A DNA stretch of 64,000 bases, taken from Ranitomeya imitator. Taxonomy: Eukaryota. A model generated the notes under the pieces. It did no database searches, was not told the DNA's origin, and saw only the letters and a program-made list of their open reading frames with translations. The translations under genes were made by a program, and so were the position numbers. Each line of letters begins with the position of its first letter. The stretch's first letter is position 1. Positions 4,582-62,200 of the stretch are shown piece after piece. The stretch covers positions 121,024,001 to 121,088,000 of the forward strand of contig NC_091289.1 of assembly GCF_032444005.1 (NCBI RefSeq). The letters are read 5' to 3'.

Positions 4582-4612
<31 letters not shown>

Positions 4613-25600: not shown

Positions 25601-28600
25601 AGAGGGGGTACAGGGCACTGAAAACAAAGCCAAAAGGTTACTGAGATTGTGAAACTGTATATAAAACCAGAAACAAAAATTAAAGAATAACAACGTATCT
25701 GTAGATATCATAATAACTATTTACACACTTCTCACTTGGAAACCGTCCATGACGGTTATTTTACCTCTCGTCGGAGCTGATTAGTTATGTTCTATTAATA
25801 ATGACCGGTATTAGGAAGGGGGATTGAGGTGCGTTCTAGTATCTCTGAGCATCAAGTGGGCTAATCTCGTTCCTTGCATCCTCCTGGTATAAGGGTACCA
25901 TCTCACAGTGGCACTTTGGTCGCTACGACGGCACGATCCGTGACGTTCCAGCGATATACTTACGATCTCGCTGTGTCTGACACGCTCCTGCGATCAGGGA
26001 CCCCGCTGAGAATCGTACGTCGTGGCAGATCGCTTGAAACTTTCTTTCGGCGTCAAGTGTCCTGCTGTGGCGGCATGATCGCATGGTGTAACAAAGGTGT
26101 GCACGATATTGTATACGATGTGCGCATAGTAACCAACGGCTTCTACATCGCAAATACGTCATGAAATTATCGCTCCAGCGCCGTGCATTGCGAAGTGTGA
26201 CCGCAGTCTACGACGCTGGAGCGATAATGGTGCGATGCTGGAGCGTCACGGATCGTGCCGTCGTAGCGACCAAAGTGCCACTGTGAGACGGTACCTTAAG
26301 GCATAAGTATTATCATTTCAAGGTTGTGTTAAGAATCAGCTGTGATCCCATGCTGTCCTGTCTGTATCCTCCTTTGTGTCCTCCCTGCCCAGGAGATGAA
26401 TCTATAATTACACTGGCTATTGGTCTTTCAATGAGAAAATAAAAACACTGTGGCCTTGATTCATCATTTGTGGCTTTTTTTTAATGAAACTTTTATTTTT
26501 TTGTCTTGAGGTATTTACTGTGGTTAATTGCGCCAAATTCATAAAAATACATCAACGGAAACTCAAGGGAAATAAGGAAAGGCAGGTCATCAAAATGCCT
26601 TGCACCTTGTTCATGAATATCATCCGTGCGGGGCAGTCCCAGTCTCAGACTCAGTCAATGAAGAAAAACATGAAGGAAAGTTCTCCAAAAATGATCCCAA
26701 TGGATTGCCTTGCACAGGCGTGCGCTACGGAGGACAGGGAATGAACTTCAATCCAATATTGCGGCCAGCATACAGCCAGCGGGTAAGGAAAGGGTGAATC
26801 AAACACCTGAAAACTCCGCCCATATGACCGAAAACCGATCCTGCCAAATTCAGGTGACAGGTTCCCTTTAATTGAATGCAAACAAAAAAAGGCTCAAAAG
26901 CACACACAGACCTTGACAAAAAAACAGGTGCAAAGGCAATGATGAATTGTGAGAATCGTCTTTCACACACACTATTGTTTCTTGACAGGACAAAATAAGA
27001 AAATATGGAATTACAGTAGCTAATTTGATTCTTAATTTGCAACAATCCGCTATTTTCACTGATCTAAGCTTTCCTTGTGGTTTGAAGTTGTAAAGTTTGT
27101 CATTTTCTGTAATTTTTTTTTTAAGACCTAGGTGCACACATTCCTTCAGATAAAATATAAAAACTTTATTTATTTTACCATGGTTATAATTCCATGGCAG
27201 TCAAAAAAATGAAAAGATTATGACAAGGAAAAAGTGACGCGTTTCAATCATACTCCTGAGATCTTCACCAGAGCTAAGATTTTAAAATGTTACCTATGTT
27301 ATCTTAAGGAGCTGGAACGAATCTTTTCTCTTTGTTACGTACGTTTGATCAGAACAGAGCTCCGCGTAATTTGGACCTTTTTGTTGAGCAGCTACATTGT
27401 TTTTTTTAATTCACACATCATTTGCATACTAGCAATATCAGATTTAGTTTACATTTTCCCAAGCTAATAATTTTACCAATATATTAAATGATTGGCATTG
27501 ATATGGTGGCTGGTACCTGGCTCCACTGAAAATGCACTGGACAGCGTCTGACAACTGCTTCCGACTGCTGTTACTGTTGCGTGGTACACCTCGCCACATT
27601 CAGTGCCCTCGATCACACAGGTTTCAGTTGTAGACTGGCACATCAGTTCCTTCGGACCGCCAATGCTTTGCATTTCAGCCACATATGTATCTACACCTAT
27701 TCCACGGCTATTTGTCCACAATATCTGGGTGGTTCCATTAGCACACATACTTTTAGCAGACACATCTGTTGGTTTGCAAGGCGCTGTAAATCAGAAACAG
27801 AAAAATGTTGGTGGGAGAAGGATGTACAGTATATTATGCCGTCAATTATTACAAAGATTTTTGAAACAGTTGACTTTCATGGCACTTTTACTGGTCACAA
27901 GATGACATGCAGATAAGTCTGTGTCCATCTTCTAGAATCTCCATCAATCTGAAAACCAATTGGTTACTCTTCATCATAGTCAACAAAAAATATAGTGACA
28001 GTAAAATAGTAACTTTGTCTCATAAATCGATCTTTCAAATGAAGATAATAAAATTTGTAATATATCCTATCAGAGAAATATGATTCTTTCTCTACTTATA
28101 GGTCTGTGTTCACACAGTGCATCCATTCTGTGCTTTTTAGGCTTTCTATTTGTGGGATAACCATAGCGTTTTTGCCACAATTTCATACCTACAACATGTG
28201 AACATCTTAATCATTTTTTTTGTCTCCTGCACTGATCATTCACTTTTCAAAATTGCTCAAATCTGTCAACAGATCTGTCTGCAGTGCCTAGAAAAGTCTA
28301 TGGAGAAGGGAGAGCAGAGAAATGCTGAGGCTTCTAATACAGAGGGAAATCTGCTAAAAAAGCCAGAAACAAGTCATATAATAGTCAGAAATAGTATTAT
28401 TCCTCATGGACACAACAGCTTATTCAGAAAACTCACCTGAAAGTACAGACATTTAAAGGGATATTCCCGAAAATGTAATGTTAAGGCTCTGTACTCGGTT
28501 TTCTGTGGTAGTTTCACAGACATAGAGACGAGAATTTCACACTGGCGTTTTTTGCCAGACGTCGCAATGCGTCGTTTATGGCAAAAAACACATCCTGCAA

Positions 28601-31600
28601 AGTTGTTTGCAGGATGCGTTTTTGCCCCATAGATTAACATTAGCGACGCATTGCGACACTTTGCCACACGTCGCAACCGTCGTGCGACGGTTGCGCCGTG
28701 TTGTGGCGGACCGCCGGGAGCAAAAAACGTTAAATGTAAGATTTTTTGCTCCTGGCGGACCGCTTTTTCCGACCGCGCATGCGCGGCTGGAACTCCGCCC
28801 CCACCTCCCCGCACCTCACAATGGGGCAGTGGATGCACCGGAGAAATGCATCTGCTGCACCCGTTGTGCAGTGCATCAAACGCTAGCGTCGGAATCTCTG
28901 CCTGACGCATTGCGACGGGGAGATTCCGACGCTAGTGTGAAAGTAGCCTTAGCAATGTGCACCTCTACTCCATTCACACAAGGTCTCAGCACAGCCTAGT
29001 CAGGGGATTCAGAGTCTTGTTCTCGGTGTCGCTAGGGGTCTCAAGAGATACACCCCCATTGACCATTACATTATCCCTTATCCTATGGATAGAGGATAAC
29101 TTTAGATTCTGCGAATACCCTTTTTAATATTTTAATATTTAAAGATAATTTTCAGCAGATTACACACTACAGAACTGTAAGGTAAATATTTTGTGGTTAA
29201 TCTTTTGTAAAGGGAATCTGTCACTAGATTCATGTCATGCAAACCAAAGGCTGCATGAATCGAAAAACCACGGGGAGTATGAATCAGAGCATGGCTGCAT
29301 GTTTGCAGCCAAGTGCCCTTTTCTCTAAAACGCCCGGGCATTTCAGAGAAAACAAACCCTGAAGATCTGAGAACCATAGGGAGCGATTGGACTAGTCCGA
29401 TGCCTCCCCTAGCCGATTCTCCCTGCTCTGCTCTAGTGGATTGACAGGTCTCTCCCATTCACTCATGTATGTAGAGACCTGTCACTTACTGGAGTGGAGC
29501 TGAGAGAGCTGCACTGGACTGATCACATCTCTCCCTGAAGTCCCCAGCCGGCTCCTGGAACTATGATCTCTCTGAAATGCTGGAGGGTTTCAGAGAAAAA
29601 CACAGCTGGATGCAATTGTGCAGCCAGGATCTGATTCATGCTGCCTGTGGTTTTGACAGCATGAATTGAGTCACAGTTTACCTTTTAACACTGCAGATCT
29701 TGAAGGTGTCCAGGAGAAATCATATAGAGCGAATGTTTTAAAACAGACTTAACATATATAATACATCTTAGTCCCATAGCAGGCTATGGGTTCCAAATCA
29801 CAGATCCATACATGTATTCTTATCAGTAAGGGCATAACTGCTGCCATATGCAGTCATGCCGGCTTCTATTAGGCTCGCTGTCTCCGGTACTGGGGGGCTA
29901 CATTTGCCTATACGTGCACACAACATTGACACCAGTGCCAGTGGCTGAGAAAGAAGACTGTAGATAGGCAACATGCAAGCCAAAAAAGCCATGCTCTTCC
30001 TCTACAGTACCTCATATGCTTTAGAAGCAGAGTAACCGAGCCGCCTAACCTGGGAGAAGCTGAAAGCCTAGCACATGGACATCTGCCATCTCCTCTCACA
30101 GTATAGCCTGCTACCCTGTAGGAACATTTCTCTCATTATACCACTGCTACCATGACCTTGGTATAGTCGAAGGCGCTCTCTGGGAATACTAATACCCCCT
30201 TAATCCAACTAATTGTTGATACCCCTATTTAACAAAACCCACCGTTCACCCGCCCCCCATTACCAATTAATGACAGAGACATAATTTTGTTGGAATAGTA
30301 TAGGCCACAGCAGCCTCTTTTATTAAACATCAAACATTAACAATAAATGTAAAAAGCATTAACATTCTTTAAAACTAGGAGAAGTCCTTGGAGCCCCCAA
30401 GATTCTGGTGATTTAATAACCCATAACGTGAACAACAACTTAACCAATGTTTTACTCCCAGCCGTTGTAACCCTGGCTCGGGAGCACCAAAAACCCACAA
30501 GAGGCTTCACTGTTCACGGTACTAATCTGGAGATCCGACCACCCCTGCCGGAACTCCCCACCACCATTCACCAGATCCGAAACCAATTAATTCCAAAACG
30601 GGGGGAGCCATATGCCAATGGACCCCCCAAACCAATTTTCACCAACTCCAAGGACTCCCCCCAGCCGCCACAACGAAAGGCCTTTGACCACCTTAAAGGC
30701 CCGAGACCCCACCAAAACGAAAAGCTATGGCCCTTTCAATGCCCTCCTGAAGACCCAGAGTCCAAAAATCCATTCCCACGGCATTCAAATGAACACCGTC
30801 AGCCAACCAATATTCCCCTTTACTTTTTTCCAATTCGAAGTGCCTCACCGCCACGCCCCCATTCCGAGACATGAAGGCGGACACTGCCCTATTCACTTTT
30901 ATCCTGGCCTTATCGATTTTTTCTAGAGATCTCATATGCTTCCACCGTTTTCGTGGAACAATGTCAGACCAAACAATGGTCAAACCTGGGTACAATACCC
31001 ATAACCTCAAGCAGTCCTGCTTTATATCCTTTACCAACTCACGAAAAGGCCGGGCCCCCAAATCCTTACCCCCAACATGTAAAACCAACACATCCGGGGC
31101 TCTGTCCAAACTCACGCCGTTGTGAATTTCGCGCAACACTCGATTCCATGTCATACCCCGAAAACCAAGCCACCGGATCACTGCCACGCCTCGATCAAAA
31201 CCGAGCTGTCTGCCCTCCGTCCGCACATCGGCCCGCAGCGCTCCCCAATGGACATAAGAGTGACCGAAAATCCACACCAGTAATGACTGGCGACCTGAAA
31301 AACAAAAACACAAAACTCAAATAAAACCCACACCATAGCAGAACCTTCAACACACTCTTACAAGTCCCCACCAACCATCCCCTGTGGACGTACGTAACTG
31401 CGAAACCTGCTTGATCGCCACCTGCCGATCCGCCGAATGGCGGGAGCCCCGAGACCCCCAAGTGCAGCCTCAGTCGCAGCCCCTATCCGAAAAGAATGGG
31501 GGGCAAAACAGGCCCCATCTAGACCCAATAGCGCAATTTCTCTTTTAAAAACCGCTGTGAATTGGTAATGAGACAAACAAGAACCATCCTGATGGCACAA

Positions 31601-34600
31601 TAATGATCGATCGCGCCTAGGCTGAAGGCCCCAGTACCAGCGCAGACAAGCAACAGGACACATAGCCGAACCATCAACTGAACCCAACAAGATCCTGCTA
31701 CCCCGGCCCTCTTGATCCGATTTTGATCGCCGTAACCACAGTTCCACGTGACCATCAGACAAAAACACATCCCTGGCTAAAATTCCCCCCGACACCTGTG
31801 TACTAGGCGACACTAACTCGCCCACTCGAAAAGCCCCGAAAAAGGCTAATGAAAAAGCCAGCCGAAATAAACAAAGCTCCAAAACCGAAAAACATAAAGA
31901 TGACAACACCTCGCCCAACTTCTCTAAAACTTTAAAGGAAACCGGCCGCCTAGAATCCTTTTTTTCCGGCCTCCGCCTGAAACCCTTCACTGCTCTCTGC
32001 ACCAGAAAAGACTTGGTAATATCGCAGAGGCCACGCAATTTAAAACCAAAGGCCAAAGCCGCCAAGACTCTTGACACTTTAGAAGATGACCATCCAACCG
32101 ATGCCCCGCGACTCAACCATGGCAGCAGGACCCCCACCTGATCTTCCTGACTTGACCCACTATGTGCGGCCAAAAACAAGTCCTCCCACTTCCTCCAAAT
32201 CGCCTGATAAGCCTCCCAAGTTCTGGGAGCCAACGACGCCTTAATCAACGCCTCAGCGTCCCGGATACCACTAGCCAAAGTTCCGCAGGGCACTCCAACC
32301 CGACCGCTTGAGCCTCCGGAGCCAAAGACCGAAAACGATCGAACTGTAAACGAGAAAGAGAGTCAGCGATGGAATTACAAACTCCCGGCACATGCGACGC
32401 CGTTACGTGTGCATTCAGAGACAAACACAACAACACCAATTGCCTTAACACACGCATCACCGGGGGCGATGACGCGGACAAGCTGTTAATCGCACAAACC
32501 ACCCCCAAGTTATCACAGTGAAAACGAACTCGCCTATTTCGAAAAATCCCCTGCCACAAATGCACCGCTACCAAAATGGGAAAAATTTCCAACAACGCAA
32601 TGTTACGAACCAGACCGGAGGAAATCCAAGTCGCTGGCCATTTTGACGCACATCATTGACCCTGAAAGTAGGCTCCGAAACCCGACCCACCGGCTGCATC
32701 GGTAAATAACTCCAACGACTCATTGTCAATCACGCTCTCGATAAACAAGGACTTGCCATTATACGTCTTCAAGAACTCACTCCAAACCGCCAAATCCTCC
32801 TTGTGTTCAGACGACAACCGTATAAAATGGTGAGAAGCCTTAACTCCCGCAGTCGCAATAGCCAATCTCCTTGAAAAAACTCTGCCCATCGGCATGACCC
32901 GACAAGTGAAATTGAGTTTTCCTAGCAATGATTGCAACTCTCGCAAAGGCAGCTTGCGCAGGCGACCAACCCGCCACACCTCATCACGAAGGCCTGTCAC
33001 TTTGTCTTCCGGCAACTGAAACTCCCACTGAACTGTATCAATGACGATACCTAAAAAACACAAACACGTGCTCGGGCCCTCCGTCTTACCTGGGGCCAGC
33101 GGGACGCCAAAACGAAAAGCCACCCATTCTATTGCAGTCAAAATCCTAGAACAACAGTCAGACCCGGCCGGGCCAACGCATAAAAAATCGTCTAAGTAGT
33201 GCAAAATCGAATCACAACCAGAAACTTCTCGAACTACCCATTCCAAAAAGGAACTAAAAGCCTCAAACAGGGCACAAGATAACAAAAAACAACCCATGGG
33301 TAAACACCTATCGACAAAAAATCGATCCTCCCAAAAACAACCAAGAAGTCTAACGCTAGACGGATGAACTGGCAACAGGCGAAAAGCGGATTCTATGTCC
33401 GTCTTGGCAAGCAGAGCACCTTTTCCGCATTTTTGTACCCAAACCGCCGCCTCATCAAACGATGCATACACCACCGAACACAGCTCTGGATCAATGCCGT
33501 CGTTCACCGATCTCCCCTTGGGGTACGACAAGTGCTGAATCAGGCGAAATTTTCCCTTCTCTTTTTTAGGGACTACACCCAAGGGGGAGACGACTAAATC
33601 TTCAAACGGAGCCTGTTCAAACGGGCCCGCCATGCGGCCCAGCGCCACCTCCTTACGTAATTTTTCAGAAACCACATCAGCATGCAACAAGGCTGAACGC
33701 AATTTTTCTCTAACCAAGGGGACCGCAAAGGAAGGAGCCGGAATAACAAAACCTTCCGTAAAGCCTGACAACAATAAGGCCGCCTTTTCCCTATCCGGGT
33801 ATCTATTTAGATAAGGGGCCATCCTTTCCACCTTCACTGGTGTCTCCCCCATAAGAATTAACTGAACCTGACTTTGCCTTGCCTTTTTTAAAACATTTTG
33901 CGGCTCCTTGGGAGGTACCACTGCAGTGGGAACACAAGTGCTTAAATTTACAATTGACTCCAAATTTGCACTGTCCCTCATTAAATTGCCAGCAGACGCC
34001 CAGTTTTTGTCCGCCTGCCTGTCCCGCATTACCTGAGGTACTCGCAGCGCCGGGCTGTGAACCATGGCCAGAAGCCCCGGCCCCCCCATGAAAGGGGGTA
34101 CCAAACTTGTACTGCGCCATTACGCGCAACCAAAGACCAATATCTTTTTGGTCCCATCTAATGGCCTGCCGAACAGCTTTCCTCTGTCTGAACTGCTCGT
34201 CATACCTAAGCCACGCCTGACCGCCATACACCCTGTGAGACTCGCTAATGGAATCCATATAACAAAATAAACCCGAGCAATTCTCGGGCGCCGTCTCGCC
34301 AATAACACTGGCCAGGATAGCGAAAGCCTGAAGCCAATTGGCGAAAGTCTGGGGAATTAAACGCCACCGCCGTTTTTCCTCCTCCTCTTTTTTCGAATCA
34401 TTCTTCTTCCCCTTATCAATGTAAATTTTTTCCAGCGGGAGCAGTGAAAAAATTTCCACATATTCGTCTTTGCTTATCTTTTCTCTGACCTCTTTTTTCA
34501 GATGCGCCCCCAACGGGCCCTCAAAACACACATACACCTCTCCGTGGGCGCTATCGTCTAAATGGATCCTACACTCCTTCTCTTTCTCCGTCTGCACCAA

Positions 34601-37600
34601 GACGGAAACCGGTTCCGAGACCTCGACCTGCACAGCCGCTGCATTAACCGGGCCCGCCTGCTGACCAGACCACGCCCCCAAAAACCCCTGCGGACCTACG
34701 CCGCCATCCAATCTCGCCAACAATGTCTGCACGCCAGCTAAAAGCTCCCGGACCCCCGCCGCTTCGCCACCGCCTGCCAAACCCGCCACAGCTAAACCGC
34801 TAAGTGCTCCCTGACCACCACCAACTGCAGGCGAACTCGCATCAGAATGACACAAACGAGACACAGACGCATACTCACCGGGCTGCAAGGGGTCTGTGGT
34901 CCCTCCAGCCGGAGTGCTGGTATCCTGAGCTGGTATCCTGACGTCCGCGAACCGCCCACCGGTGAACCTTGATGCTGGCTATCCGAAACGCTGCTCTGGA
35001 ACGTCGCCGATACCTGCGGCACCAGATCCGGGCCCCAGCTGGCAGAGGCCGTCCGCGCTGGTGAATAAGGGGCCCGCTGTCCGCTGCCCGCCACGCTCCT
35101 TGCTGCCACAGGAGGCTGAACAGGCCTCAGCCCTGGAGCAGGGAGACCCCCCGCCGCCGCTGCAGGGGCCGGCCCGGCGCCGTCCAGCCTCGGGCCGCCC
35201 GCTCCTCCGGCCACTCCCGCTCCTCCAGATCCCGTCACTGTTGCCGAGGCAGGCCGCGCGGCAGGAACATCACCGCCGCGGCCTCCCGAAGCCCTAGGCC
35301 CCATGCGTTGTCCGGCGCGTCTAGGCCCCGCTCCCACCACGCCACGAGGTGAGGGCCTAGCCACCGCCGCTGTGCCCCGTCCGGCTGTCGGATTCCTCCC
35401 AGGCCGGGGCCTGCCCGCCGCTGCTCTTACCGGTGCCCGGCCTGGAGGGTCCCGGGAGGGGCTCCTGCGCCTGCGGGGGGCACGTGGTCCAGAATCCGGC
35501 GACAGCCGCTCGGGGGGCCGTGTCCGCCGAGCTCGCCGCTCCAAAGGGGGGACCACAGATGAAGATCCACCTCCGCCGCCATCCATCAAATGAGCCACCT
35601 GCGCTTCCAGCCTACCCGGAGGGCGAGAAGCTGCAGCCGCCCTCACGCTGGCCATGCTTCTGCTAAGGTGAGCGGGAACTGACCTGCCCCCGCCCCCTAC
35701 CCCTTACAATATCCCCTGCCACTAACCCCCCCCACCCTTCTAATTAGCCTAAAGACGCCCACCCCCTCCTCTCCTAACCCCTGTCATGTAGGCCTTCACT
35801 TAGCCGCGGGGGGGAGGGGGCGGCTCGCTCCGGCCTGTCCTTCTGTGCAGCTGTAGGGGATGCAAATGCGTATATTGTTCCCTCTTCTCCCCAACCCTTT
35901 TAAGTATGTATAATATGATGAGTATTTGATTAATGTGTTCGTACACGGTGGCACTGCTACACATAAGGAGTATTGTCACCGTATAGCAGAGTACTGCAAC
36001 ACTTTATGCGTATTACTCTGCATATTTACATATGTCTACATGCTTTGCACACATGTTGGTTAGGGAAAATATGTGCCACGGGTCCATATAATGTTAGGGG
36101 GCGTAGTACCCCAAGTTGGCTATTAGATGGGGGCATTATAGAACATAGACCTAATGATAGGTATAGTTAGAATAGGAGGGGCACGATGGGGATAAGTATA
36201 GTGGTGTAGCTTCCTGTTTTATTCAGTTGAGGCCTGAGTGCCCGTGCAGCTCATATCGGGGCTGGCTAGCCCAGGGTACTTTGTGTCCCGTAACGTTCCT
36301 TAGGAAGGATTAGGTCCAGAAAAGATATCCAGTGGGCCGGTACTAAGAAGAGAGAGAGTGAGAGAAAGAATACAGCAACAGCAGGATCAGCAGTGCAGGA
36401 ATAGTGGACTGCAGCTACTGAACAGAAGAAGGTTGAGCCATTTGGGAGAAAGTGCACCGAGATGTGGCAGATGTTTGTGAGTCGCCGCGAGGGCTAGGGG
36501 TCACTCGGTACTAGGCCCTGCGATTCACAGGGGGATGTCACGGTGGCTGTGACCCGGTCCGTGGCCCAGGGCGCCCATGTAAACGGGAAAGGTTGTTAAA
36601 GGGATAGAGTTTATGTTCGTAACGCCACCTGTGGTATTCGGTCAGTGGGGACCGACGCTGCTTTAAGGGGTCTGCTGGGGTGATGTTATGGCAGCTAGAT
36701 GGTATACCTTCCCACAGGTGAAGTATGTCCCCAGGGCTTCCCAATGTGTAGATGGTGGTATGGTGAGAGGCACAGAGAAGAACGAGGACACAAGGTTTCA
36801 GTCTCTTTACCTTTTACTGAAGACTTCAGCATCCATCCACAGTCCAGGGCACCAGACCACAGGGCAGGCAGAAAAGTCTGGGCAGTCCAGAGACAAGCAA
36901 GTTCCCCTGGGTAAGTCAGGTGGGAGCCTACCACTCTGCGCTTTCTGTCTCTAAGTCCTTGCTGCCACTAAGTGTCTCAACAAGGTATTTAATCGTTCTG
37001 CTGTCCTAGGACAGGTACCTGTATGGCAGGCAGCTCAGACCGTGTGAACTGGGGTCTGTTCTCGGTGACTCCAGGCTCCTAGGTGCTGCTGTGCCACAGG
37101 TAATTATGGGCGAAGTCCTTGTAGAACAATACCCTCCGGTTCTGCTCTGTGTTTTATAATCCACAAAAGCCTTGAGCTCCCTGTACCCAGATTCTTGCAC
37201 TGATACTCGTCAGAGGCCTGCTCATGGCCTCCTGGAGCTCTCTATTTCCTCTGTGCTCCACTCCTGTCTGTCCTCGCACACAGACTTCTACTACCACCTG
37301 AGCTGTCTCCGCCTCCAAACCAGGATCTTTATTGAGGGAAGCTGCCTTAAAACAGGGCTTGGAGCTCCCCCCTCCTGGCCTGGAAGTGGAAGGTGTTGTG
37401 TGTGTGTAAACCTACCAAAGGAAACCTCACTTGTCTCCAGACATAGCACTATCCTCCCCGTGAGGAAGACAACACTACTGTGGTACCCGAACTCCTGGGG
37501 TGCCACATTTGCGTGGGCCGCCATTCTCAGAACCGGGGTGAAATGGCAGGGAATGCCCCCACGGAAGGCAGAAATACTGAACGTTGAGGACACTGCAGAA

Positions 37601-40600
37601 CCATATGGTACGAACCGCCCTGAACGCAGGTTAAGCGACAGGCAAGGGTCAGAGACATCGATGCCCAATGCTGTATCAGTGTGTTCCCTGGATGACAAGT
37701 TGCTGAGTAAAGATGTTGAAGTGAAACTGGACTGTGACTCCTTATTCTTAGAATTGTCTGCAAAGGTACTGACCCGTACCGGGGAAGCCCTGATGGCGTA
37801 GAGAAGCAGCACCGAGGTACTCAGAATGGAAGACGTGTCTGTATGCAGGAGGAGGCCCAGGGAGTGATACAGGGATTGCTGTCGGCCATGGCTACCTCCC
37901 TGGTTCCCTCTTCCTACGCAGCCATTACAACATCTTATGGTATGATAATTAAGATGTCTGGTCTGGCATCTGATAATTTAGGTACCTGGTTTTGGGTCTG
38001 ATAATTCTAAGGTAACATAACATCCTAAACCTATAGAGGTGGCCATACACCTTAAATAGTTCTTTCACCTTACAGCTATTCCTCCTGATTCCCATCTCTG
38101 CATCACACATACCTGTATTCTCAATGGTAAAGGGTAGTAGGCTGCTTACAGTCATTTCTAGTGGCTAATCTCCATTAAAAGCAACACAATTGATCTTGAT
38201 GAATTCTAACAAGCCCCCAAACTGCTGTTGGGGACAAAAGGGATACTCCCATACCAGGTGTGAACACAGACAGAAGAGGGCCCCTGCGGAAGAAGAAGAA
38301 TATATGGGCTCTTTGCAGTATAATAGCTCCTGAAAACGCACAATTACACCTGATTTTGAGATGGCAGTGGCCCCCTTACCTCATGACCTCCTGTCCTCCT
38401 GAGCCCCTGTACATACACATTAGATGGTTGACCACTCGCCCAATGTGTATGGCTACACTTGGCAGCTTAGTTGTAATTTTCAAAACCATAGTTATGGGGA
38501 TAATGGGCACATTCAAATATTTACAATGGGGCCCGGCCTTTTCTAGTTACACCCCTGCTTAGCACAGTTGTGTGCATGAGGCTTTAGAAAAGGGGACTTG
38601 TCATGCTACAAATCATTTCTAAAATCATTTTAAAAAATGTAGAAAAAAATTAACTTTACCTGAAAGTAATGGTGCACTCTGATTGGAGGAAGAGACACAC
38701 TGACCATTATTGGCATCAACAGAAACAGAGAACGGTTGTCCACAGCTAATATTGCTGATTTCGCATTGATTCTCTAGCGTTGTACAGTTGTGATGTTCAG
38801 AGTCGCCCCATGCAGTAGCTGTGAATGTTAGATTTCCGGTGTCCTCCATCCACGTGACAAGTATTGTGTTTTCATAGCAAATTAATTCAGTAGTGACAAT
38901 CTGTGGGATACAGGGAACTGCAAAGACAAAAAAAACCCAAACATTTTATTTTGCTTCGTAACTGGAAGTAAGAAACTGTTCAAGTGATAGGATGGAATGA
39001 GAAGGCTGCTGTAGATCAGCAGTCAGTGATTGTCTGCAGTGGTCATGTGATGCCCCCCCCTCCCCCCACTAGAGGTTGCCTCTAGTAGACAAGCAGTGAA
39101 CATAGTAGTGAGTGTGGAGGAATCACCTAGCAGGTAAGTATAGTTTTTTTTTTCCTTAAAACACCCTGGGCGCATTAAGTATAACCCGTTTAATTTTTAA
39201 CTTTCTTATTGTGCCATTACATTGTGCATATAAAAAATTGGAGGTGTTTCATCTGAGAAAAAAAGGCTTTTTAATGTTTCTATAAAAAGAACACAAAAGG
39301 AACATGTCACGTTTAGTGTTGATCGAATAGTGAAATATTCGGATTCAGGAAAATCGGCACAAATAATTTCTAATATCCGTGTATCCGTACCGAATAACTA
39401 ATCTAATGCAAGTCAGTGGGAAAGACGAATATATTTCTTTAGACCCAACAATCGTGTCTGGGAGCCTGAGAAAAAAGCTTAAATGGATGGGACAGAGCTA
39501 AAACTAAATGGGGACAGCATTGAGAAGATGCCTGCATGCCTTTCTGACTCACATATGGTATCTGGGAATAATTTTGTCAGACTATTGCGTCGGTTTTACA
39601 GGTTTTTAAAAAGACCCACCAAACCAAACATTTTTTTAAAAAGGGAAAAATGCTAAGAAACATTATTTCTTTCATAATTGCATATTACATGTATATAATG
39701 AAAAAAAAAAAATAAAAATAAATTATACCTCCCCTTTAGCAGAGTGCCAGCAGGTGCTGTGAAACCTGAGTTTGGTAAGGGCCCTCAGTTGACCCTGTAT
39801 CATACATTTGGTAGAGCTTTCGGGAAGTCCCTCTCTCATGCCAAATAGATAGCCAGACAGTGGAATACATATTCCCCATCACTTTGCAATGCCAGCTAAG
39901 ACATGCCCATTTGAATTTTGGGCTTTGCCCGCCACCACCACCATATCCACTGCCTTATGCGACCCTCGCTGACAATTAGCAGAGTGCCTGTAGATGCCGT
40001 GAAACCTGCATTTTGTAAGGTCCACAGGTCATTTTTGCCACCGGATCCCAATGGAGCCACTGTCATAGCAGGTGAAGCCTCGGTAAGGTGAATATAATAC
40101 AGGAGTGGATTCTACCAAACACCAAAAGCATTAAAATTAAATTCTGAATACAGTGTATGCAAGCGAGGGCCTATATTGTGGTCAGTTTGTCAGGCCTGAA
40201 ATCCATGTCAGGAACATGTATTAGCCTCATTTTACTTGAAAGCAGCCTCCTCAAGGGAAAGAGCCAGGAGTGCCATTGACCAATCTGCACAAGCCTACGC
40301 ACTTCTTCTGGAAACTACCTAACCAGGCTGAATTTATCTTTTGCATGGTTTTAAGCAACAATGGAATAACTACAGGATATGTCACAGAGAGTGATGAGGT
40401 CTGTGGCGTGTATTACTCAGGTGACAAGCAGTGCTACACAGCTGAGGTAAAGGCCGTAGCGTGGCAATAACCATGTTCAAATATGTGTAAGGCTGCAGCC
40501 TGAATAGGTCTGTGGAGTGTATTAACCCAGTCTCTTAGACGTGCTTAAAATGTACAGAAACTGGCCAATAACCCACCAACATTTTTTTGTAAGGACCCAA

Positions 40601-43600
40601 ATGTAGAAAATGTAAGGGAAGCGACAGTTTAATAGAGACAAAAGTCTCATTTAGAAGCTTGGAAAAGTCAGCAATGGTCTTTGTCCAACACCGGAAAATG
40701 TAAATTGTTAACGAATATGTATACCCTATCTAACTTACAATTTGTGAACAGACATATATGATGACAAGGGACAACTGAACGCTGCGCTGGGACAACGAAC
40801 TGGATGTGGTTGCTTATTATTGTGTGTGCAGCCATGGGTTGTGGGCAGGAGGCATCAGCAGATTGGGACGGCCGTAACACAGGGGAAGGCACAGTGGTTT
40901 CACCCTCAGACACAGATTTGGTACCCAGGTGTTCCGCCCACCTACTGAGGTGCTTGGCTGCCATGTGCTTTTGCATGCTGGTGGTGCTCAGGTTGGCAGT
41001 GTCCTTGCCTCTTCTTAGCTTGGTTTGGCAGATGCTGCAAATTACAGTTGTTTCACCCTCAGACACAGATTTAGTACCCAGGTGTTCCGCCCACCTACTG
41101 AGGTGCTTGGCTGCCATGTGCTTTTGCATGCTGGTGGTGCTCAGGTTGGCAGTGTCCTTGCCTCTTCTTAGCTTGGTTTGGCAGATGCTGCAAATTACAG
41201 TTGTTTTATCTGAAGGACTTTAAGGAAAAAACTGCCATACAGGGGATCAACGCACCCTTGGCCTGTTTTCTAGCCAAGTAGGGGAGCTCTGTGGAACAGT
41301 TGACCGAGTTCTACCTCTGGGCAAACCACTACCTCTTCTTGCCTGTTTTCTTGCTACAGATCCATCCCTCTCTGCACTGCTGTGCTTGCTAGTCATGCCA
41401 CCATGCCAGGTTGGATCAGTGGTCTCATCATCGACCAACAGAGGTGTCCACATTCACCCAGGCATACAGACATTGGCCTTCGGTAAGTGTTCACATTTGG
41501 ACAGGGGGGTTAGGGACCCATCAGTTATGAGACCACCTTGACAACGGTTGATGGGCTCACACTATTTGATTATATCAAATTCTGTGCAAAGCGTCTCTTA
41601 AATATTTTCCTAATGTTCAAAAGCCATTTTGCTATTCATATTTCATATATTTCAGATTAGACATGCTTTTGCACAATAGAGTGCAACCTTTTTTGTATAT
41701 TTATGTATGGAGGTAGCTGCTCCTGGTATGCACCTACCTATTCACACTAGTTTGGATGTGCGAGTCTTTTTTTTTGTCATCTCATCATCGACCAAGTCGG
41801 CTTCCAATTCCTCAATCTGATCCTCCCTCTGAGTTGCGATTTGAGGCTGACCTCATGGCAACTGTGCCTCATGATTATTCTTCACCTCTTCAGACATCAA
41901 TTGACCTTCCCCAATGTGGCTTTCTCCTGGCAGTGGGTGCTCAAATGTTTGAGCATCACAGGACTCCACCTCCTCATGACCTTATTTAATGGTGCATGTT
42001 GAGAGGCCTGATAAATTACAAGGGAACGTAAACAGTTCCTCAGAGTGGCCAGCGTTGGGATCATATGTCTCCTGGGACTCTTGATGATGGGAGGAAGAAG
42101 GACCAGGTTGAGGATTCAAAGGCTCAGCCTCTTGGCTACTGAGACTGGACCGTTTGGAATACTTTGTGGTGCTGCTTGTCAACACATTGGAGCCTTTGTC
42201 TGCCATCCAACTCACAACATACTCAAACTTGTCTGAGTTCGTTAGTGGTGTAGCACGATGACCAAATTTTGACAGGAAACTAGAACGAGGTACAGTAACC
42301 TTTGGATCTGTCACACAGCCTTGGTGGGCACCACCACATCCACATCCCTTAATGTCACCCTTTCACATCTTGAATGCGTTATGCTTATGAAACCAAAAAA
42401 TACTGGCTTTATTTTTCACAAACACTTCAAATGCAGAGTAAGATTATTGCCCCTGCTAAATTGTCACGTACAATTATCTGTACCTGTATTGCTCCAGTCG
42501 CACAACTGGTAGATAAATATATGCTATTTTTTTAGAACAATAGAAAACTAAGATTGTTTTTCAGTCAGCTTACTATAACCCTGCAAATGGGAAGTAATGA
42601 AGATTATTTCCCCTGGTAAATTGTCACATTCGATTATATGTATCCGTATTGCGCCAATCACACAACTGGTAGATAAAGATAGACTATTTTTTAGAACAAT
42701 AGAAAACTAAGATTTTTTTTTCAATCGGCTTACTATAACAATGCAAATGCGGAGTAATGAAGATTATTACTCCTGCTAAATGTAACTGCAATGACTAGAA
42801 CAGCTAGGTGCCTGCTTTCCACCCATCCCCCCTGCTATTAAATCTCTCACTACTAAATCCCCACCTAACAAACAAAAAAAAGTAATCTTGACAGTCATCA
42901 ACTCTTAAAAGAGCTTTTTGGAATGAATAAACGCTCAGTATAAACTCCTATGGGCTCTTTTCCATTTGCGAGAAACACGTCCGTGTCTCGCATGTGAAAA
43001 CCAAGCTCTGGCGCCGGCACTCCAGAGTGGAGAGTGTGGTTGCATAGCAATACATGGAGCTGCACGCTCTGCTCCCAAGTGCCAGCGCCAGAGCTTGGTT
43101 TTAACATGCGAGACTCGCACGTATTTCTCGCAAGTGAAAAGGAGCCCTATCACTCTCCCTACACTACTTTCACTTTCCCTGCGCTCAAACTACGCTCTCC
43201 CTATGCGTTTTCTGGCTGCAAATAAAGCACCAAAGTTGCTGGGCGGGTCACTCGAATATACCGAGGCGAACACCAAATTACTCGCCAAGTAACGAATAGC
43301 CCTAATACCGTACTATTCGTGCGAGTAACATAGTGCTGAATGTATTCGCTCATCACTAGTCACGTTGTAAGTACAGTCCAAGCTATGGGCAGCATGGTAT
43401 AGGGAAGAGAAACTAAGATTTAGAGATTGTATTTTATTCATTGAAATCCGTGGTGTTTGTACGCACAAGTCAAGTGGGCGCTCGTACCAGGCATTGACCA
43501 CGCTCTCTGCATGCACGGTCATATCAGCACAACAGGGATTTCAATGAATAAAATACAAGTTTTAATGAAACTTCTCCAACAAAACTATATATTAATCTGA

Positions 43601-54273: not shown

Positions 54274-57200
54274 TGTTATGGACCTGATGGTTAGGAGCAC
54301 CCGGAACGACCTGATGGTTAAACTAACACAGGACAAGCTCTGGGAAGTGGGAGCTCTGCTGACCGCAACCCCTAATCCTATCACACACACTAGAAATAGC
54401 CGTGGAGCGTACCTAACTCTACCTAGACGCCTCTTCACAGCCTAAGAGCTAACTAGCCCTAGAGATAGAAAATAAAGCCTACCTTGCCTCAGAGAAATTC
54501 CCCAAAGGAAAAGGCAGCCCCCCACATATATTGACTGTGAGTTAAGATGGAAGTCACAAACACAGAAATGAAACAGGTTTCAGCAAAGGAAGCCAGACTA
54601 ACTAAACAGACTGAGGATAGGAAAGGTATCTTTGCGATCAGCACAAAAAACTACAAAAAGACCACGCAGAGTGTGCAAAAAGACCTCCGCACCGACTCAC
54701 GGTGCGGAGGTGCCACTCTGCATCCCAGAGCTTCCAGCTAGCAAGGCAAAATCATGATAGCAAGCTGGACAAGAAAACAATGAACGAATAATTAACTAGC
54801 AGGGACTTAGCTTCTGCTGGAGTAGACAGGTCACCAGAAAGATCCAAGAGCGAACTGAACCAGTACAAGAACATTGACAGCTGGCATGGAGTAACGATCT
54901 GAGTGGAGTTAAATAGAGCAGCCAGCCAAAGTATAAACTACGTCAAAGGAAAAAAAATGGACAGAAAAAACCAGCTCACCTACTAGGCATTTGTTGTGGG
55001 GAAGCCCGGATGACGTGCAGTCTTCACGTGAAACAGTGGAACAAATAGAAGAGAAAATCCAGCTTCCAGAAATATCCAATTTATTAAAGTTAAAATCCAA
55101 GGTCCAAAAACATGGTTCACAGGAGAGAAGATAGCATCTCTTCTGTGAACCATGTTTTTGGACCTTGGATTTTAACTTTAATAAATTGGATATTTCTGGA
55201 AGCTGGATTTTCTCTTCTATTTGTTCCAATAAACTACGTCACCTGTGGAAGGAACCTCAGAAGCAGCAGCTCCACTCACAGCCACCAGAGGGAGTCCATG
55301 GACAGAACTCGCCGAAGTACCATTCATGACCACAGGAGGGAGTTCGATAACAGAATTCACAACAGTACCCCCTCCTTGAGGAGGGGTCACCGAACCCTCA
55401 CCAGAGCCCCTAGGCCGATCAGGACGAGCCAAATGAAAGTCACGAACTAGATCGGCAGCATGAACATCAGAGGCAAAAACCCAGGAATTATCTTCCTGAC
55501 CATAACCCTTCCACTTGACCAGGTACTGGAGTTTCCATCTCGAAATACGAGAATCCAAAATCTTCTCCACCACATACTCCAACTCCCCCTCGACCAACAC
55601 CGGGGCAGGAGGATCAACGGAGGGAACCATAGGCGCCACGTATCTCCGCAATAACGACCTATGGAACACATTATGGATGGCAAAAGAAGCTGGAAGGGCC
55701 AAACGAAATGACACAGGATTGAGAACTTCAGAAATCTTATACGGACCAATGAAACGAGGCTTAAACTTAGGAGAGGAAACCTTCATAGGAACATAACGAG
55801 ACGACAACCAAACCAAATCCCCAACACGAAGTTGGGGACCAACACAGCGCCGGCGGTTAGCGAAACGTTGAGCCTTCTCCTGGGACAATGTCAAATTGTC
55901 CACCACATGAGTCCAAATCTGCTGCAACCTGTCCACCACAGTATCCACACCAGGACAGTCCGAAGGCTCAACCTGCCCTGAAGAGAAACGAGGATGGAAA
56001 CCAGAATTACAGAAAAAAGGCGAAACAAAAGTAGCCGAGCTGCCCGATTATTAAGGGCGAACTCAGCCAAAGGCAAGAAGGACACCCAATCATCCTGATC
56101 AGCAGAAACAAAGCATCTCAGATATGTTTCCAAAGTCTGATTAGTTCGTTCGGTTTGGCCATTTGTCTGAGGATGGAAAGCCAAAGAAAAAGACAAATCA
56201 ATGCCCATCTTAGCACAAAAGGACCGCCAAAACCTCGAAACAAACTGGGAACCTCTGTCCGAGACGATGTTCTCCGGAATGCCATGCAAACGAACCACAT
56301 GCTGGAAATACAATGGCACCAAATCAGAGGAGGAAGGCAATTTAGGCAAGGGTACCAAATGGACCATCTTAGAGAAGCGATCACAAACCACCCAAATGAC
56401 CGACATCCTTTGAGAGACAGGGAGATCTGAAATAAAATCCATGGAAATATGCGTCCAGGGCCTCTTCGGGACCGGCAAGGGCAAAAGCAACCCACTGGCA
56501 AGAGAACAGCAGGGCTTAGCCCGAGCACAAGTCCCACAGGACTGCACAAAAGAACGCACATCCCGTGACAAAGAAGGCCACCAAAAGGATCTAGACACCA
56601 AATCTCTGGTACCAAAGATTCCAGGATGACCAGCCAACACCGAACAATGAACCTCAGAGATAACTCTACTAGTCCATCTATCAGGGACAAACAGTTTCTC
56701 CGCTGGACAACGGTCAGGTCTATCAGCCTGAAACTTCTGCAGCACCCGCCGCAAATCAGGGGAGATGGCAGACAAAATTACCCCCTATTTGAGAATACCC
56801 GCCGGCTCAGGAACACCCGGAGAGTCAGGCACAAAACTCCTTGACAGGGCATCAGCCTTCACATTCTTAGAGCCCGGAAGGTACGAAACCACAAAATCAA
56901 AACGGGAGAAAAACAGCGACCATCGAGCCTGTCTAGGATTCAACCGTTTAGCAGACTCAAGATAAGTCAAATTCTTGTGATCCGTCAAGACGACCACGCG
57001 ATGCTTGGCTCCTTCAAGCCAATGTCGCCACTCCTCGAATGCCCACTTCATGGCCAACAACTCTCGATTGCCAACATCATAATTGCGCTCAGCAGGCGAG
57101 AACTTTCTAGAAAAAAGGCACATGGTTTCATCACCGAGCCATCAGAACTTATTTGCGACAAAACAGCCCCTGCTCCAATCTCAGAAGCATCAACCTCGAC

Positions 57201-59299
57201 CTGAAACGGGAGCGAAACATCTGGCTGGCACAACACAGGAGCAGAAGAAAAACGACGCTTCAACTCCTGAAAAGCCTCTACAGCCGCAGAGGACCAATTG
57301 ACCACATCAGCACCTTTCTTGGTCAAATCAGTCAATGGTTTAGCAACACTAGAAAAATTAGCGATGAAGCGATGGTAAAAATTAGCAAAGCCCAGGAACT
57401 TCTGCAGGCTCTTCACAGATGTCGGCTGAGTCCAATCATAAATGGCCTGAACTTTAACAGGGTCCATCCCGATAGTAGAAGGGGAAAAAATGAAACCCAA
57501 AAATGAAACCTTCTGAACTCCAAAGAGACATTTTGACCCCTTCACAAACAAGGAATTCGCGCGAAGGACCTGGAACACCATTCTGACCTGCTTCACCTGA
57601 GACTCCCAATCATCCGAAAAGACCAAAATATCATCCAAATATACAATCATGAATCTATCCAGGTACTTTCGGAAGATGTCATGCATAAAGGACTGAAACA
57701 CAGATGGAGCATTAGAAAGCCCGAATGGCATAACCAGGTATTCAAAATGGCCCTCGGGCGTATTAAATGCTGTTTTCCATTCATCGCCCTGTTTAATACG
57801 CACAAGATTATACGCCCCTCGAAGATCTATCTTGGTGAACCAACTAGCCCCCTTAATCCGAGCAAACAAATCAGACAGCAGCGGCAAAGGGTACTGAAAT
57901 TTGACTGTGATCTTATTAAGAAAGCGGTAATCAATACAAGGTCTCAAAGAACCATCCTTCTTGGCCACAAAAAAGAACCCTGCTCCCAACGGTGATGACG
58001 ACGGGCGAATATGACCTTTCTCCAAGGATTCCTTTATATAACTCCGCATAGCGGCGTGCTCTGGCACAGATAAATTGAACAGTCGGCCCTTAGGAAACTT
58101 ACTACCAGGAATCAAATTAATAGCACAATCGCAATCCCTATGAGGAGGTAGGGCACTGGATTTGGGCTCATCAAATACATCCCGGTAATCCGACAAAAAC
58201 TCAGGGACTTCAGAAGGAGTGGAAGGCGAAATTGACAGCAATGGAACATCACCATGTACCCCTTGACAACCCCAGCTGGACACAGACATAGATTTCCAAT
58301 CCAATACTGGATTATGGACCTGTAGCCATGGCAACCCCAAAACGACCACATCATGCAGATTATGCAACACCAAAAAGCGAATATCCTCCTGATGTGCAGG
58401 AGCCATGCACATGGTCAATTGAGTCCAGTACTGAGGCTTATTCTTGGCCAAAGGCGTAGCATCAATTCCTCTCAATGGAATAGGATACTGCAAGGGCTCC
58501 AAGAAAAAACCACAGCGCCTGGCAAACTCCAAGTCCATCAAATTCAGGGCAGCGCCTGAATCCACAAATGCCATTACAGAATAGGACGACAAAGAGCAAA
58601 TCAGAGTAACGGACAAAAGAAATTTAGACTGTACCGTACCAATGGTGGCAGACCTAGCGAACCGCTTAGTGCGCTTAGGACAATCAGAGAAAGCATGAGT
58701 GGAATCACCACAGTAAAAACACAGCCCATTCCGACGTCTGTGTTCTTGCCGTTCAGCTCTGGTCAAAGTCCTATCACATTGCATAGGCTCAGGCCTATGC
58801 TCAGAGAATACCGCCAAATGGTGCACAGCTTTGCGCTCACGCAAGCGCCGATCGATCTGAATGGCCAAGGACATAGACTCATTCAGACCAGCAGGCGTGG
58901 GAAATCCCACCATGACATCCTTAAGGGCTTCAGAAAGACCCTTTCTGAAAATTGCCGCCAGGGCACACTCATTCCACTGATTAAGCACAGACCACTTTCT
59001 AAACTTCTGACAATATACCTCCGCTTCATCCTGACCCTGACACAAAGCCAGCAAGATTTTCTCTGCCTGATCCACTGAATTTGGTTCATCATAAAGCAAT
59101 CCAAGCGCCAGAAAAAACGCATCTACATCACGCAATGCAGGATCTCCTGGCGCAAGGGAAAATGCCCAGTCTTGAGGGTCGCCACGCAACAAAGAAATAA
59201 TGATTTTTACTTGTTGAACGGGGTCACCAGAGGAGCGGGGTTTCAAAGCAAGAAACAGTTTACAATTATTTTTGAAATACAGGAACTTAGATCTATCCC
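54274..59299 (-). mobile_element. Sushi/Tf1-type chromodomain Gypsy LTR retrotransposon (element 1): 3' LTR 54274-55364 plus frameshifted gag-pol, interrupted in gag by element 2
   Basis: Minus-strand ORFs contain a gag Zn knuckle (CFYCGDSTHAFSDC), protease (FVDSGA), RT (YLDD), RNase H (EVDAS), integrase (HCSVLAGH..C..C; MDF, SDRG) and chromodomain (EYVVEKILDSR..YLVKWKGY..DNSW). PPT AAGGAGGGGG lies next to the LTR; LTR ends are TG...CA. Confidence 0.95.
54946..55228. mobile_element. 283-bp insertion ending in a perfect 86-bp-arm hairpin, inside the 3' LTR of element 1
   Basis: 13-bp direct repeat ATAAACTACGTCA at 54933-54945 and 55229-55241. Arms 55037-55122 and 55143-55228 are exact reverse complements. 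Confidence 0.85.
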
Positions 59300-62200
59300 T
59301 GTTGTGAATTCTGTGGCTGAATTCACTCCTGTGGTCACAAGTGGTACTGCAGCTTCTGAGCTTCCTCTCTCAGGTGTTCTGGTGAGCTCGTTGGCTGCTT
59401 TGTTATTTAACTCCACCTGATTCTGTCTTCCTTGCTCCTTGTCAATGTTTCAGTGTTGGATCTGAGCTTCTGGATCTTTCCTGTGGCCTGCTGCTCTGCT
59501 TAGATAAGTGCTTCTTTGCTTTTGTTGCAACTTTTTCTGTCCAGCTTGTCTTTTCGTTTTGCTGGAAGCTCTGAGACGCAAAGGGTGTACCGCCGTGCCG
59601 TTAGTTCGGCACGGTGGGTCTTTTTGCCCCCTCTGCGTGGTTTTTTGCTTTAGGGTTTTTTGTAGACTGCAAAGTTCTCTTTGCTATCCTCGCTCTATCT
59701 AGAATATCGGGCCTCACTTTGCTGAATCTATTTCATCCCTACGTTTGTCTTTTCATCTTGATAACAGTCATTATATGTGGGGGGCTGCCTTTTCCTTTGG
59801 GGTATTTCTCTGAGGCAAGTCAGGCTTGTTTTTCTATCTTCAGGCTAATCAGCTCCTCAGGCTGTGCCGAGTTGCATAGGTAGTGTCAGGCACAATCCAC
59901 AGCTGCCTTTAGTTGTGTTTAGGTTAGGTTCAGGTATTGCGGTCTACAGAGATTCCACGTCTCAGAGCTCATTCTGTTGTTTTTGGGTTATTGTCAGATC
60001 ACTGTATGTGCTCTGATTGCTGGCACACTGTGTCACTGGATTGCCTACATAACAGTACAAGGAGCCAACCTAATGATTCTCAATAGAGGGAAAAAAGAAG
60101 TTCTGACACCTTTTTTTTTTTCTCAGCTCTGTGTTCAGTCTTTTTTTCCCCCTAGACATTTGGGTGTTTCAGGACACAGGTGTGGACATGGATATTCAGG
60201 GTCTGTGCTCTTCAATGGATAATCTCGTTACACATGTACAAAGGATTCAAGATACTATTGATCAGAAATCTATGTTAGAACCAAGAATTCCTATTCCTGA
60301 TTTGTTTTTTGGTGATAGAACTAAGTTTCTTAATTTCAAAAATAATTGTAAGCTATTTCTGGCCTTGAAACCTCATTCTTCTGGTAATCCTATTCAACAG
60401 GTTTTGATTATTATTTCTTTTTTGCGCGGCGACCCTCAGGACTGGGCATTTTCTCTTGCGCCAGGAGACCCTGCATTGAGTAATGTCAATGCGTTTTTCC
60501 TGGCGCTCGGATTACTTTACGATGAGCCTAATTCAGTGGATCAGGCTGAGAAAAATTTGCTGGCTTTGTGCCAGGGTCAGGATGATATAGAAGTATATTG
60601 TCAGAAATTTAGGAAGTGGTCAGTACTCACTTTGTGGAATGAATCTGCGCTGGCAGCTTTGTTCAGAAAGGGTCTCTCTGAGGCTCTTAAGGATGTCATG
60701 GTGGGTTTTCCTATGCCTGCTGGTTTGAATGAGTCTATGTCTTTGGCCATTCAGATCGGTCGACGCTTGCGCGAGCGTAAATCTGTGCACCATTTGGCGG
60801 TATTGTCTAAGATTAAACCTGAGCCTATGCAGTGCGATAGGACTATGACCAGAGTTGAACGGCAAGAACACAGACGTCTGAATGGTCTGTGTTTCTACTG
60901 TGGTGATTCCACTCATGCTATTTCTGATTGTCCTAAGCGCACTAAGCGGTTCGATAGGTCTGCCGTCATTGGTACTGTACAATCCAAATTCCTTCTGTCC
61001 ATTACCTTGATATGCTCTTTGTCATCGTATTCTGTCATGGCGTTTGTGGATTCAGGCGCTGCCCTGAATCTGATGGATTTGGATTATGCTAAACGTTGTG
61101 GGTTTTTCTTGGAGCCTTTGCGGTGTCCTATTCCGTTGAGAGGAATTGATGCTACACCTTTGGCCAAGAATAAACCTCAGTACTGGACCCAGCTGACCAT
61201 GTGCATGGCTCCTGCACATCAGGAAGTTATTCGCTTTCTGGTGCTACATAATCTGCATGATGTGGTCGTGTTGGGGTTGCCATGGCTGCAAACCCATAAT
61301 CCAGTATTGGATTGGAACTCTATGTCGGTATCCAGCTGGGGTTGTCAGGGGGTACATGGTGATGTTCCATTTTTGTCTATTTCGTCATCCACTCCTTCTG
61401 AGGTCCCAGAGTTCTTGTCTGATTATCAGGATGTATTTGAAGAGCCCAAGTCCGATGCCCTACCTCCGCATAGGGATTGTGATTGTGCTATCAATTTGAT
61501 TCCTGGTAGTAAATTCCCTAAAGGTCGATTATTTAATTTATCCGTGCCTGAACACGCCGCTATGCGCAGTTATGTGAAGGAATCCCTGGAGAAGGGACAT
61601 ATTCACCCATCGTCATCACCACTGGGAGCAGGGTTCTTTTTTGTAGCCAAGAAGGATGGTTCGCTGAGACCATGTATTGATTACCGCCTTCTTAATAAGA
61701 TCACTGTTAAATTTCAGTATCCCTTGCCATTGTTATCTGACTTGTTTGCTCGGATTAAGGGGGCTAGTTGGTTCACTAAGATAGATCTTCGTGGTGCGTA
61801 TAATCTGGTGAGAATCAGGCAAGGAGATGAATGGAAAACTGCATTTAATACGCCCGAGGGTCATTTTGAGTATCTAGTGATGCCGTTCGGACTTGCCAAT
61901 GCTCCATCTGTGTTTCAGTCTTTTATGCATGACATCTTCCGTGAGTATCTGGATAAATTCCTGATTGTTTACTTGGATGACATTTTGATCTTCTCAAATG
62001 ATTGGGACTCTCATGTGAAGCAGGTCAGAATGGTTTTCCAGGTCCTGCGTGCTAATTCTTTGTTTGTGAAGGGATCAAAGTGTCTCTTCGGTGTGCAGAA
62101 AGTTTCATTTTTGGGGTTCATCTTTTCCCCTTCTACTATCGAGATGGATCCGGTTAAGGTCCAAGCCATCCAGGATTGGACTCAGCCGACATCTCTGAAA

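Follow-up and report, generated by a model that had tools for sequence, protein, structure and literature searches.

Retroviruses make their env-type subgenomic mRNA by joining one splice donor, located near or inside gag, to one acceptor ahead of the 3' gene. In the mouse, the insertional mutations by ETn and IAP elements come from retroelements that lie in an intron in sense orientation and cause premature splicing and polyadenylation of the host gene. For the Ngaro-like tyrosine-recombinase (YR) retrotransposons of Xenopus, it is known that the recombinase is followed by an open reading frame (ORF) for an SGNH hydrolase, described as having "no proven function" (PMC9210276, citing Goodwin and Poulter 2004). 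Splicing of Ngaro elements is unmentioned in the open literature, a scope outside which lie Goodwin and Poulter 2004 and Poulter and Butler 2015, both of which may mention it. Here we analyze a stretch of 64,000 nucleotides (nt) from Ranitomeya imitator (NC_091289.1), called the window below, in which a host gene composed of FN3-domain exons and a Ngaro element within one of its introns both lie on the minus strand. The original prediction regarded the hydrolase of this element as a candidate alternative terminal exon of the host gene. Our analysis leads, with high confidence, to another explanation: the element is a decayed sense Ngaro copy in an intron of an FNDC7-like gene, and its SGNH ORF, which has no ATG, serves as 3' terminal exon in a spliced subgenomic message that belongs to the element itself.

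In this explanation, a donor inside the first ORF of the element (ORF1), with the exon end at 34879, would be joined to the acceptor whose first exon base is 31294, and the 3,584 nt excised (34878-31295 in the window copy) would hold the gag domain, the reverse transcriptase (RT) and RNase H, and the recombinase. From an intact element, such splicing would yield about 220-310 N-terminal residues of ORF1 followed by a hydrolase of about 200 residues, the message being polyadenylated after an AATAAA. That such RNA is spliced in Ranitomeya imitator we infer from conservation and from gene models. Both splice sites and their phase are conserved over the lineages, and the poly(A) signal is found in most lineages with enough 3' sequence. 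Since splice sites, phase, ORF and poly(A) signal recur together, the cassette is best taken as the element's own terminal exon, and its recurrence in all Ngaro lineages compared puts the arrangement of acceptor, ORF and poly(A) signal far beyond chance.

The acceptor of the window copy reads ttttgtgtttttgtttttcag^GTCGCC on the minus strand, where the caret, here and below, marks the splice boundary. The hydrolase frame begins at the codon GGT (31295-31293), so that a phase-1 donor gives the first base of this codon. The ORF behind it matches Pfam Lipase_GDSL_2 (PF13472) with an E-value of 4.8e-7 and 30.9 bits, against a curated cut-off of 32.9, and its homologues occur in many anuran genera with a best identity of 69%. 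All the sequence details of the original prediction hold true in our analysis: the acceptor at 31295/31294 in front of an ORF without an ATG, the phase-1 end of the host exon at 38660 (...CTT TCA G^gtaaag), a frame that stays open for 200 codons until the stop at 30693, and the AATAAA at 30324-30319 on the same strand. The pyrimidine fraction of the Ngaro acceptor is 0.80, to be compared with 0.70-0.80 for the host's own acceptors, and it is one of only six strong YAG acceptor-like sites in the intron of 10,876 nt. Within the RT region, a strong acceptor-like site (ttgccag^TT) is also seen at 33368 on the minus strand, followed by a phase-1 frame open for 237 codons; this site and its open frame may well be due to chance.

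To follow the splice signals across frog Ngaro elements, six lineages were compared, namely the window copy and the contigs L002, L006, L007, L008 and L010, for which even the best-conserved coding DNA is only about 65% identical. A pyrimidine tract with YAG stands 14 nt ahead of the LVWI codons, in phase 1, in the window copy and in L001, L002, L006, L007, L008 and L010, the contigs having the variants tttcag^GT, ttttag^GG, tttcag^AT and ttctag^GG at the DNA level, and the hydrolase motif LVWI.GHS lies downstream of it. Most ORF calls derived from contigs and reaching upstream of this motif read straight through the acceptor, giving peptides in which T-rich codons are followed by SG, SD, TD, TG or PG, mostly four residues before LVWI; such a peptide is the pyrimidine tract and YAG translated in a fixed phase. 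An AATAAA is present 356-390 nt past the hydrolase stop in L002-L004, L007 and L010/L011, and in L008 neither AATAAA nor ATTAAA occurs within 953 nt after the stop.

The donor is conserved in a similar way. It reads CAGCCCG^gtgagt in the window, CAGCCCG^gtaagt in L002, CAGCCTG^gtgagt in both L006 and L008, CAGTCTG^gtaagt in L007 and CAGCCAG^gtgagg in L010, which gives the consensus CAG(C/T)CNG^GT(A/G)AG inside ORF1, with the peptide "...QP^G" and phase 1. All six lineages encode the junction Gly by GGT and have RAG as the codon after it, amid a protein of low complexity, and such constancy in lineages so far diverged speaks for selection acting on the splice site. L006, L007 and L008 have an open frame from ATG to donor, in phase 1 like the acceptor, and L008 has an intact ORF1 of 619 residues with the donor at codon 255. 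An alternative donor in the window, CCG^GTAAGA (exon end 35431), was rejected, as it is in phase 0 and has no counterpart in other lineages. At the start of the recombinase ORF, which also has no ATG, a pyrimidine tract with CAG (window 32343-32362, minus strand; AG 32345-32344) stands in phase 1 and is another of the six strong acceptor-like sites in the host intron. A similar site recurs at about 4195-4210 in L006, 1156-1171 in L007 and 1627-1642 in L010, hence in four of four lineages checked. It may be a second acceptor, in which case the ORF1 donor would make a fusion of the ORF1 N-terminus with the recombinase; its conservation is ambiguous because it overlaps the conserved coding sequence for the RNase H C-terminus (QW[DE]RF).

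Annotated gene models agree with the fusion expected from these sites. We counted 51 annotated frog models with at least 60 residues ahead of the hydrolase (LVWI), of which 27 start with the ORF1 N-terminal motif (M..E.L...LR..A..RG..WL) and therefore encode the ORF1 N-terminus fused to the hydrolase. The N-termini of the fusion models are homologous to ORF1 of the window element. The junction residue, five positions before LVWI, is G or D in 37 of the 51, with QP just before the junction in 14, and the pattern "...QP^G/D-xxxx-LVWI" of the models matches the "...PLQP^G" of the window. Two fusion models span 4,622 and 4,701 nt, compared with 4,963 nt from the ATG to the hydrolase stop in the window. 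Fusions of the ORF1 N-terminus with the hydrolase are also found under public annotation names (P0064, P0066, P0067, P0085, P0091, P0112-P0115 and P0125), such as collagen-like, polysialoglycoprotein-like, MARCKS-like, IF-2-like and SRRM1-like, probably because the N-terminus of ORF1 is of low complexity. In a few other models (P0007, P0133 and P0134) the hydrolase is joined to a Tc1-type transposase, N-terminal in P0007 and C-terminal in P0133, or stands as a fragment before a P2Y-like receptor.

The window copy itself is decayed. From ATG to donor there are 777 nt, which puts the donor in phase 0, and it is in phase 1 in the gag frame, with which residues 251-619 of L008 ORF1 align from 34891; a one-base indel therefore lies upstream, roughly at 35050-34880. 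Because of this frameshift between ATG and donor, the copy is unable to make its own fusion. An in-frame stop (32655-32653) parts the RT from the RNase H. As for the hydrolase, the catalytic blocks I (GHS) and V (DGVH) are kept, and block III is GGKD, with the Lys codon at 31067-31065, where 118 of 121 hydrolase homologues have Asn (GGND). The change removes the "N" of SGNH, so the full catalytic set of Ser, Asn, Asp and His is incomplete in this copy, and its esterase is probably impaired.

The assignment of the element to Ngaro, and its place in a host intron on the host's coding strand, had been proposed before and are confirmed here, the assignment by the order of domains and by similarity to Ngaro contigs. 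The copy has a size of about 5.7 kb. Going upstream from the hydrolase on the minus strand, it shows a tyrosine recombinase, RNase H, RT, a zinc-finger gag-like ORF and ORF1; thus RT and RNase H, a recombinase downstream of them and an SGNH hydrolase ORF after the recombinase, as in Ngaro-like YR retrotransposons, are all present. Nucleotide similarity is found to the Ngaro contigs L002 and L006-L011, reaching 64-65% identity over 1.3-2.3 kb with L002, L006 and L010. In tblastn, residues 92-232 of P0056 fall onto 35538-35053 in ORF1 (E-value 1e-17), with RPPERLSP common to both, and the gag-like part of ORF1 is 46-52% identical to ORF1 of L008 and L007. The Pfam family RVT_1 matches in the ORF 32653-34104 (E-value 1.6e-6) and, weakly, the RNase H-like RVT_3 in 32245-32595; in L006 the corresponding frame runs uninterrupted over 600 amino acids. 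Residues 13-109 of the Xenopus laevis model P0054 align to the recombinase ORF (E-value 1e-20), which holds an equal position in L006, L007 and L010. The ends of the copy (about 35955 and 30295) were estimated from the AATAAA and from the spacing of about 700 nt between hydrolase stop and ATG in L007 and L010. In these two contigs the hydrolase is followed by a further ORF1 after a gap of this length (L007, hydrolase 2173-2841 and ORF1 3546-5429; L010, hydrolase 2631-3248 and ORF1 from 3978), an order which indicates head-to-tail copies, or circular or permuted Ngaro templates. The coordinates of all features are collected in the table.

Table. Features of the host gene and of the Ngaro copy in the window (64,000 nt; all on the minus strand)
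Feature	Position	Strand	Details
Host FN3-domain exon, fifth in window	38660..38917	-	258 nt, phase 1-1, donor CAG^gtaaag after 38660
Decayed Ngaro-type tyrosine-recombinase retrotransposon	30295..35955	-	sense to host gene, inside the 10,876-nt intron; ends approximate
ORF1 N-terminal region, ATG frame	34792..35655	-	ATG at 35655; motifs RAAA..G.LE and RPPERLSP common to frog ORF1 proteins
Internal donor of the element, CAGCCCG^GTGAGT	34877..34879	-	exon end 34879, GT 34878-34877, peptide ...TTDPLQP^G
Gag-like part of ORF1 with CCCH zinc finger	33806..34978	-	Pfam zf-CCCH 4.4e-5 (ORF 33803-34888)
RT/RNase H reading frame	32248..34119	-	RVT_1 and RVT_3 matches; one in-frame stop 32655-32653
Tyrosine recombinase ORF	31361..32362	-	weak Phage_integrase match (E 0.0065; ORF 31358-32293)
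3' splice site of the element	31294..31316	-	pyrimidine tract, AG 31296-31295, first exon base 31294, phase 1
SGNH/GDSL hydrolase exon, no ATG	30693..31294	-	199 codons plus junction codon; TAA 30695-30693
AATAAA	30319..30324	-	369 nt past the hydrolase stop
Next host FN3 exon	27517..27783	-	267 nt, phase 1-1, acceptor tttctgatttacag^CG

The host gene, as modelled in the window, is a row of phase 1-1 exons of 258-267 nt, each starting with "PC.P". The fn3 family of Pfam matches only weakly for the two exons which flank the element (E-value 0.01 for the upstream one), and the Atlas feature hits of the host exons are to FN3/FNDC7-like proteins; the gene is here called FNDC7-like, with the Ngaro copy housed between two FN3-domain exons. 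The exon at 27517-27783 is the expected normal splice partner of the donor at 38660. In the host intron ahead of the fifth exon, an ORF at 40671-41219 (minus strand) contains a stretch like a BED-type zinc finger (ICSICQTKLRRGK...MQKHMAAKH), which suggests a remnant of a hAT-like transposase. Elsewhere in the window, two long retroelement pol-like ORFs with closely similar peptides are opposed to each other within 55200-64000 (57051-59369 on the minus and 60107-63010 on the plus strand), and a coding-looking minisatellite, with units such as GPCAALYGANICV and several frames open on both strands, occupies 3200-4150.

A number of points weigh against a spliced Ngaro message. The junction of the ORF1 donor with the acceptor is visible in gene models only, no spliced transcript having been seen directly, and gene models are predictions, some of them plainly chimeric (RT-hydrolase, Tc1 transposase-hydrolase and recombinase-hydrolase). 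The spliced form is in none of the proteins that searches found from Logan or ENA contigs, and those of them reaching N-terminally past the hydrolase motif carry the unspliced acceptor tract. Split direct repeats (A1 ... B1 A2 B2) are also missing, as no direct repeat of at least 18 nt links the 5' and 3' regions of the element; for this reason the ends of the copy are approximate, and it may be truncated or too decayed. The transcript-like contigs are unspliced, L003-L005 being collinear with L002, and contigs of four public runs, compared with 30290-36289, gave pieces shorter than 330 nt, 88-97% alike and without joints, which leave 31090-31289, just inside the exon, uncovered; the public runs are Logan contigs, none of them on record as RNA.

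Other explanations were considered as well. If the AG before the hydrolase ORF were incidental, unspliced RNA would be the template for the hydrolase, whose translation would depend on reinitiation, frameshifting or read-through downstream of the recombinase ORF. Overlapping ORFs are indeed described in the published accounts cited here, which propose frameshifting for the recombinase (PMC9210276; quotation in PMC13003380), and the Xenopus laevis model P0054 joins recombinase and hydrolase. However, tract and YAG are fixed in position and phase across lineages, the donor paired with them keeps its synonymous sites although the region around it is poorly conserved, and in the window a stop and a change of frame separate the recombinase from the hydrolase, so we regard this explanation as very improbable. 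The same small probability must be given to a functional exonisation, in which the hydrolase would have been recruited as a regulated alternative terminal exon, yielding a secreted or surface FN3-esterase. Only the compatible frame and the intact ORF of 200 codons favor it, whereas the element's own design accounts for every feature, Lys replaces the Asn of nearly all homologues at block III, the rest of the copy decays in the way that a lack of selection would predict, and no expression was seen in the contigs of the four runs, with 31090-31289 uncovered. That an esterase carried on an FN3 scaffold would be functional is thus unsupported, given the decay of the copy and the missing Asn of block III.

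The explanation by the element's own message is compatible with a more modest role of the host, namely that some host pre-mRNAs splice from 38660 to 31294 and receive their poly(A) tail after 30319. They would encode a shortened array, five FN3 domains or more, that ends in an esterase which is probably inactive, a by-product either neutral or mildly harmful. Across the join the peptide would be ...APLLS-G-RQSLLVWIFGHSY, with an open frame of 200 codons, the junction codon included; the stop codon lies in the terminal exon, and the acceptor equals the host's own in pyrimidine content and is among the few strong sites of the intron. With its phase-1 cassette of acceptor, ORF and poly(A) signal among phase 1-1 host exons, the element could therefore trap host transcripts in frame. 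There are annotated precedents in other frogs: in the Rana temporaria model P0106, a retinol dehydrogenase 7-like isoform X2, "G-EPC-LVWIFGHSYV" comes after an adh_short domain, and in the Nanorana NXPE1-like model P0099 (locus L001) the last exon consists of a solo fragment of the hydrolase preceded by tttcag^GT. Such chimeras make occasional gene-trap splicing plausible, but both are gene predictions. On the other side, no joint was found in the contigs compared with 30290-36289, none of them on record as RNA; the runs X9-X11, of the same species and guessed to be RNA, contain next to none of the words of the host exon, while X1 contains 36%; and an efficient trap in sense orientation would be selected against. 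We therefore consider such trapping possible but doubtful. As for the fit of the frame, phase 1 is constant for the Ngaro acceptor and phase 1-1 for the host FN3 exons, hence a match between them has a chance of one in three, and it follows automatically for any sense Ngaro in a gene built of phase-1 exons. Of the terminal-exon candidate, then, the in-frame geometry and the strength of the acceptor stand, and chimeras elsewhere lend it some weight, but the features on which it was based are the element's own conserved signals, and any use of the cassette by the host is most likely rare aberrant splicing and not a selected isoform. A still wider proposal combines a retrovirus-like splicing programme of anuran Ngaro elements, in which a single ORF1 donor serves phase-1 acceptors ahead of the hydrolase and perhaps of the recombinase, with a 3' cassette that acts as a natural phase-1 gene trap and repeatedly builds host-esterase chimeras in genes composed of phase-1 domain exons, the FN3 gene being a live example; taken as a whole we find it unlikely.

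For the host gene little follows from these results, as the locus holds one more decayed intronic transposon, with a hypothetical potential for fusion. The wider point concerns the element, since comparison of the lineages indicates that the Ngaro esterase is expressed from a spliced message and fused to the N-terminus of ORF1. If true, this would account for dozens of "collagen-like", "IF-2-like" and "polysialoglycoprotein-like" proteins of frogs that end in an SGNH domain, and every sense intronic Ngaro would give host genes a phase-1 terminal exon.

Among known systems, the closest are the amphibian Ngaro-like YR retrotransposons (order DIRS; for example DIRS-53_XT and DIRS-54_XT), with which the window copy shares the gene order of gag-like ORF, RT/RNase H, recombinase and hydrolase, and from which it differs by inactivating lesions and by having no detectable split direct repeats. 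With the SGNH/GDSL family (PF13472), the Gly-x-Ser of block I (GHS), the GG-x-D of block III and the D-x-x-H of block V can be aligned, whereas Lys takes the place of the block III Asn and the score is 2 bits below the curated cut-off. Like the ETn and IAP insertions, the Ngaro copy is intronic, on the same strand as the host gene, and presents the host transcript with an acceptor and a poly(A) signal; in contrast to them, its acceptor is not a cryptic one but a conserved splice site of the element followed by a long in-frame ORF, and its effect on the host is only hypothetical. Compared with retroviral env, the 3' gene of Ngaro is an esterase and carries some 220-310 residues of ORF1 as a fusion, integration is by a tyrosine recombinase, and splicing is deduced from sequence comparison. 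The likeness to env lies in the plan of expression, which would consist of a single donor in the first ORF, an acceptor before a 3' ORF without an ATG and a common poly(A) site, with the first ORF supplying the start codon and the N-terminus.

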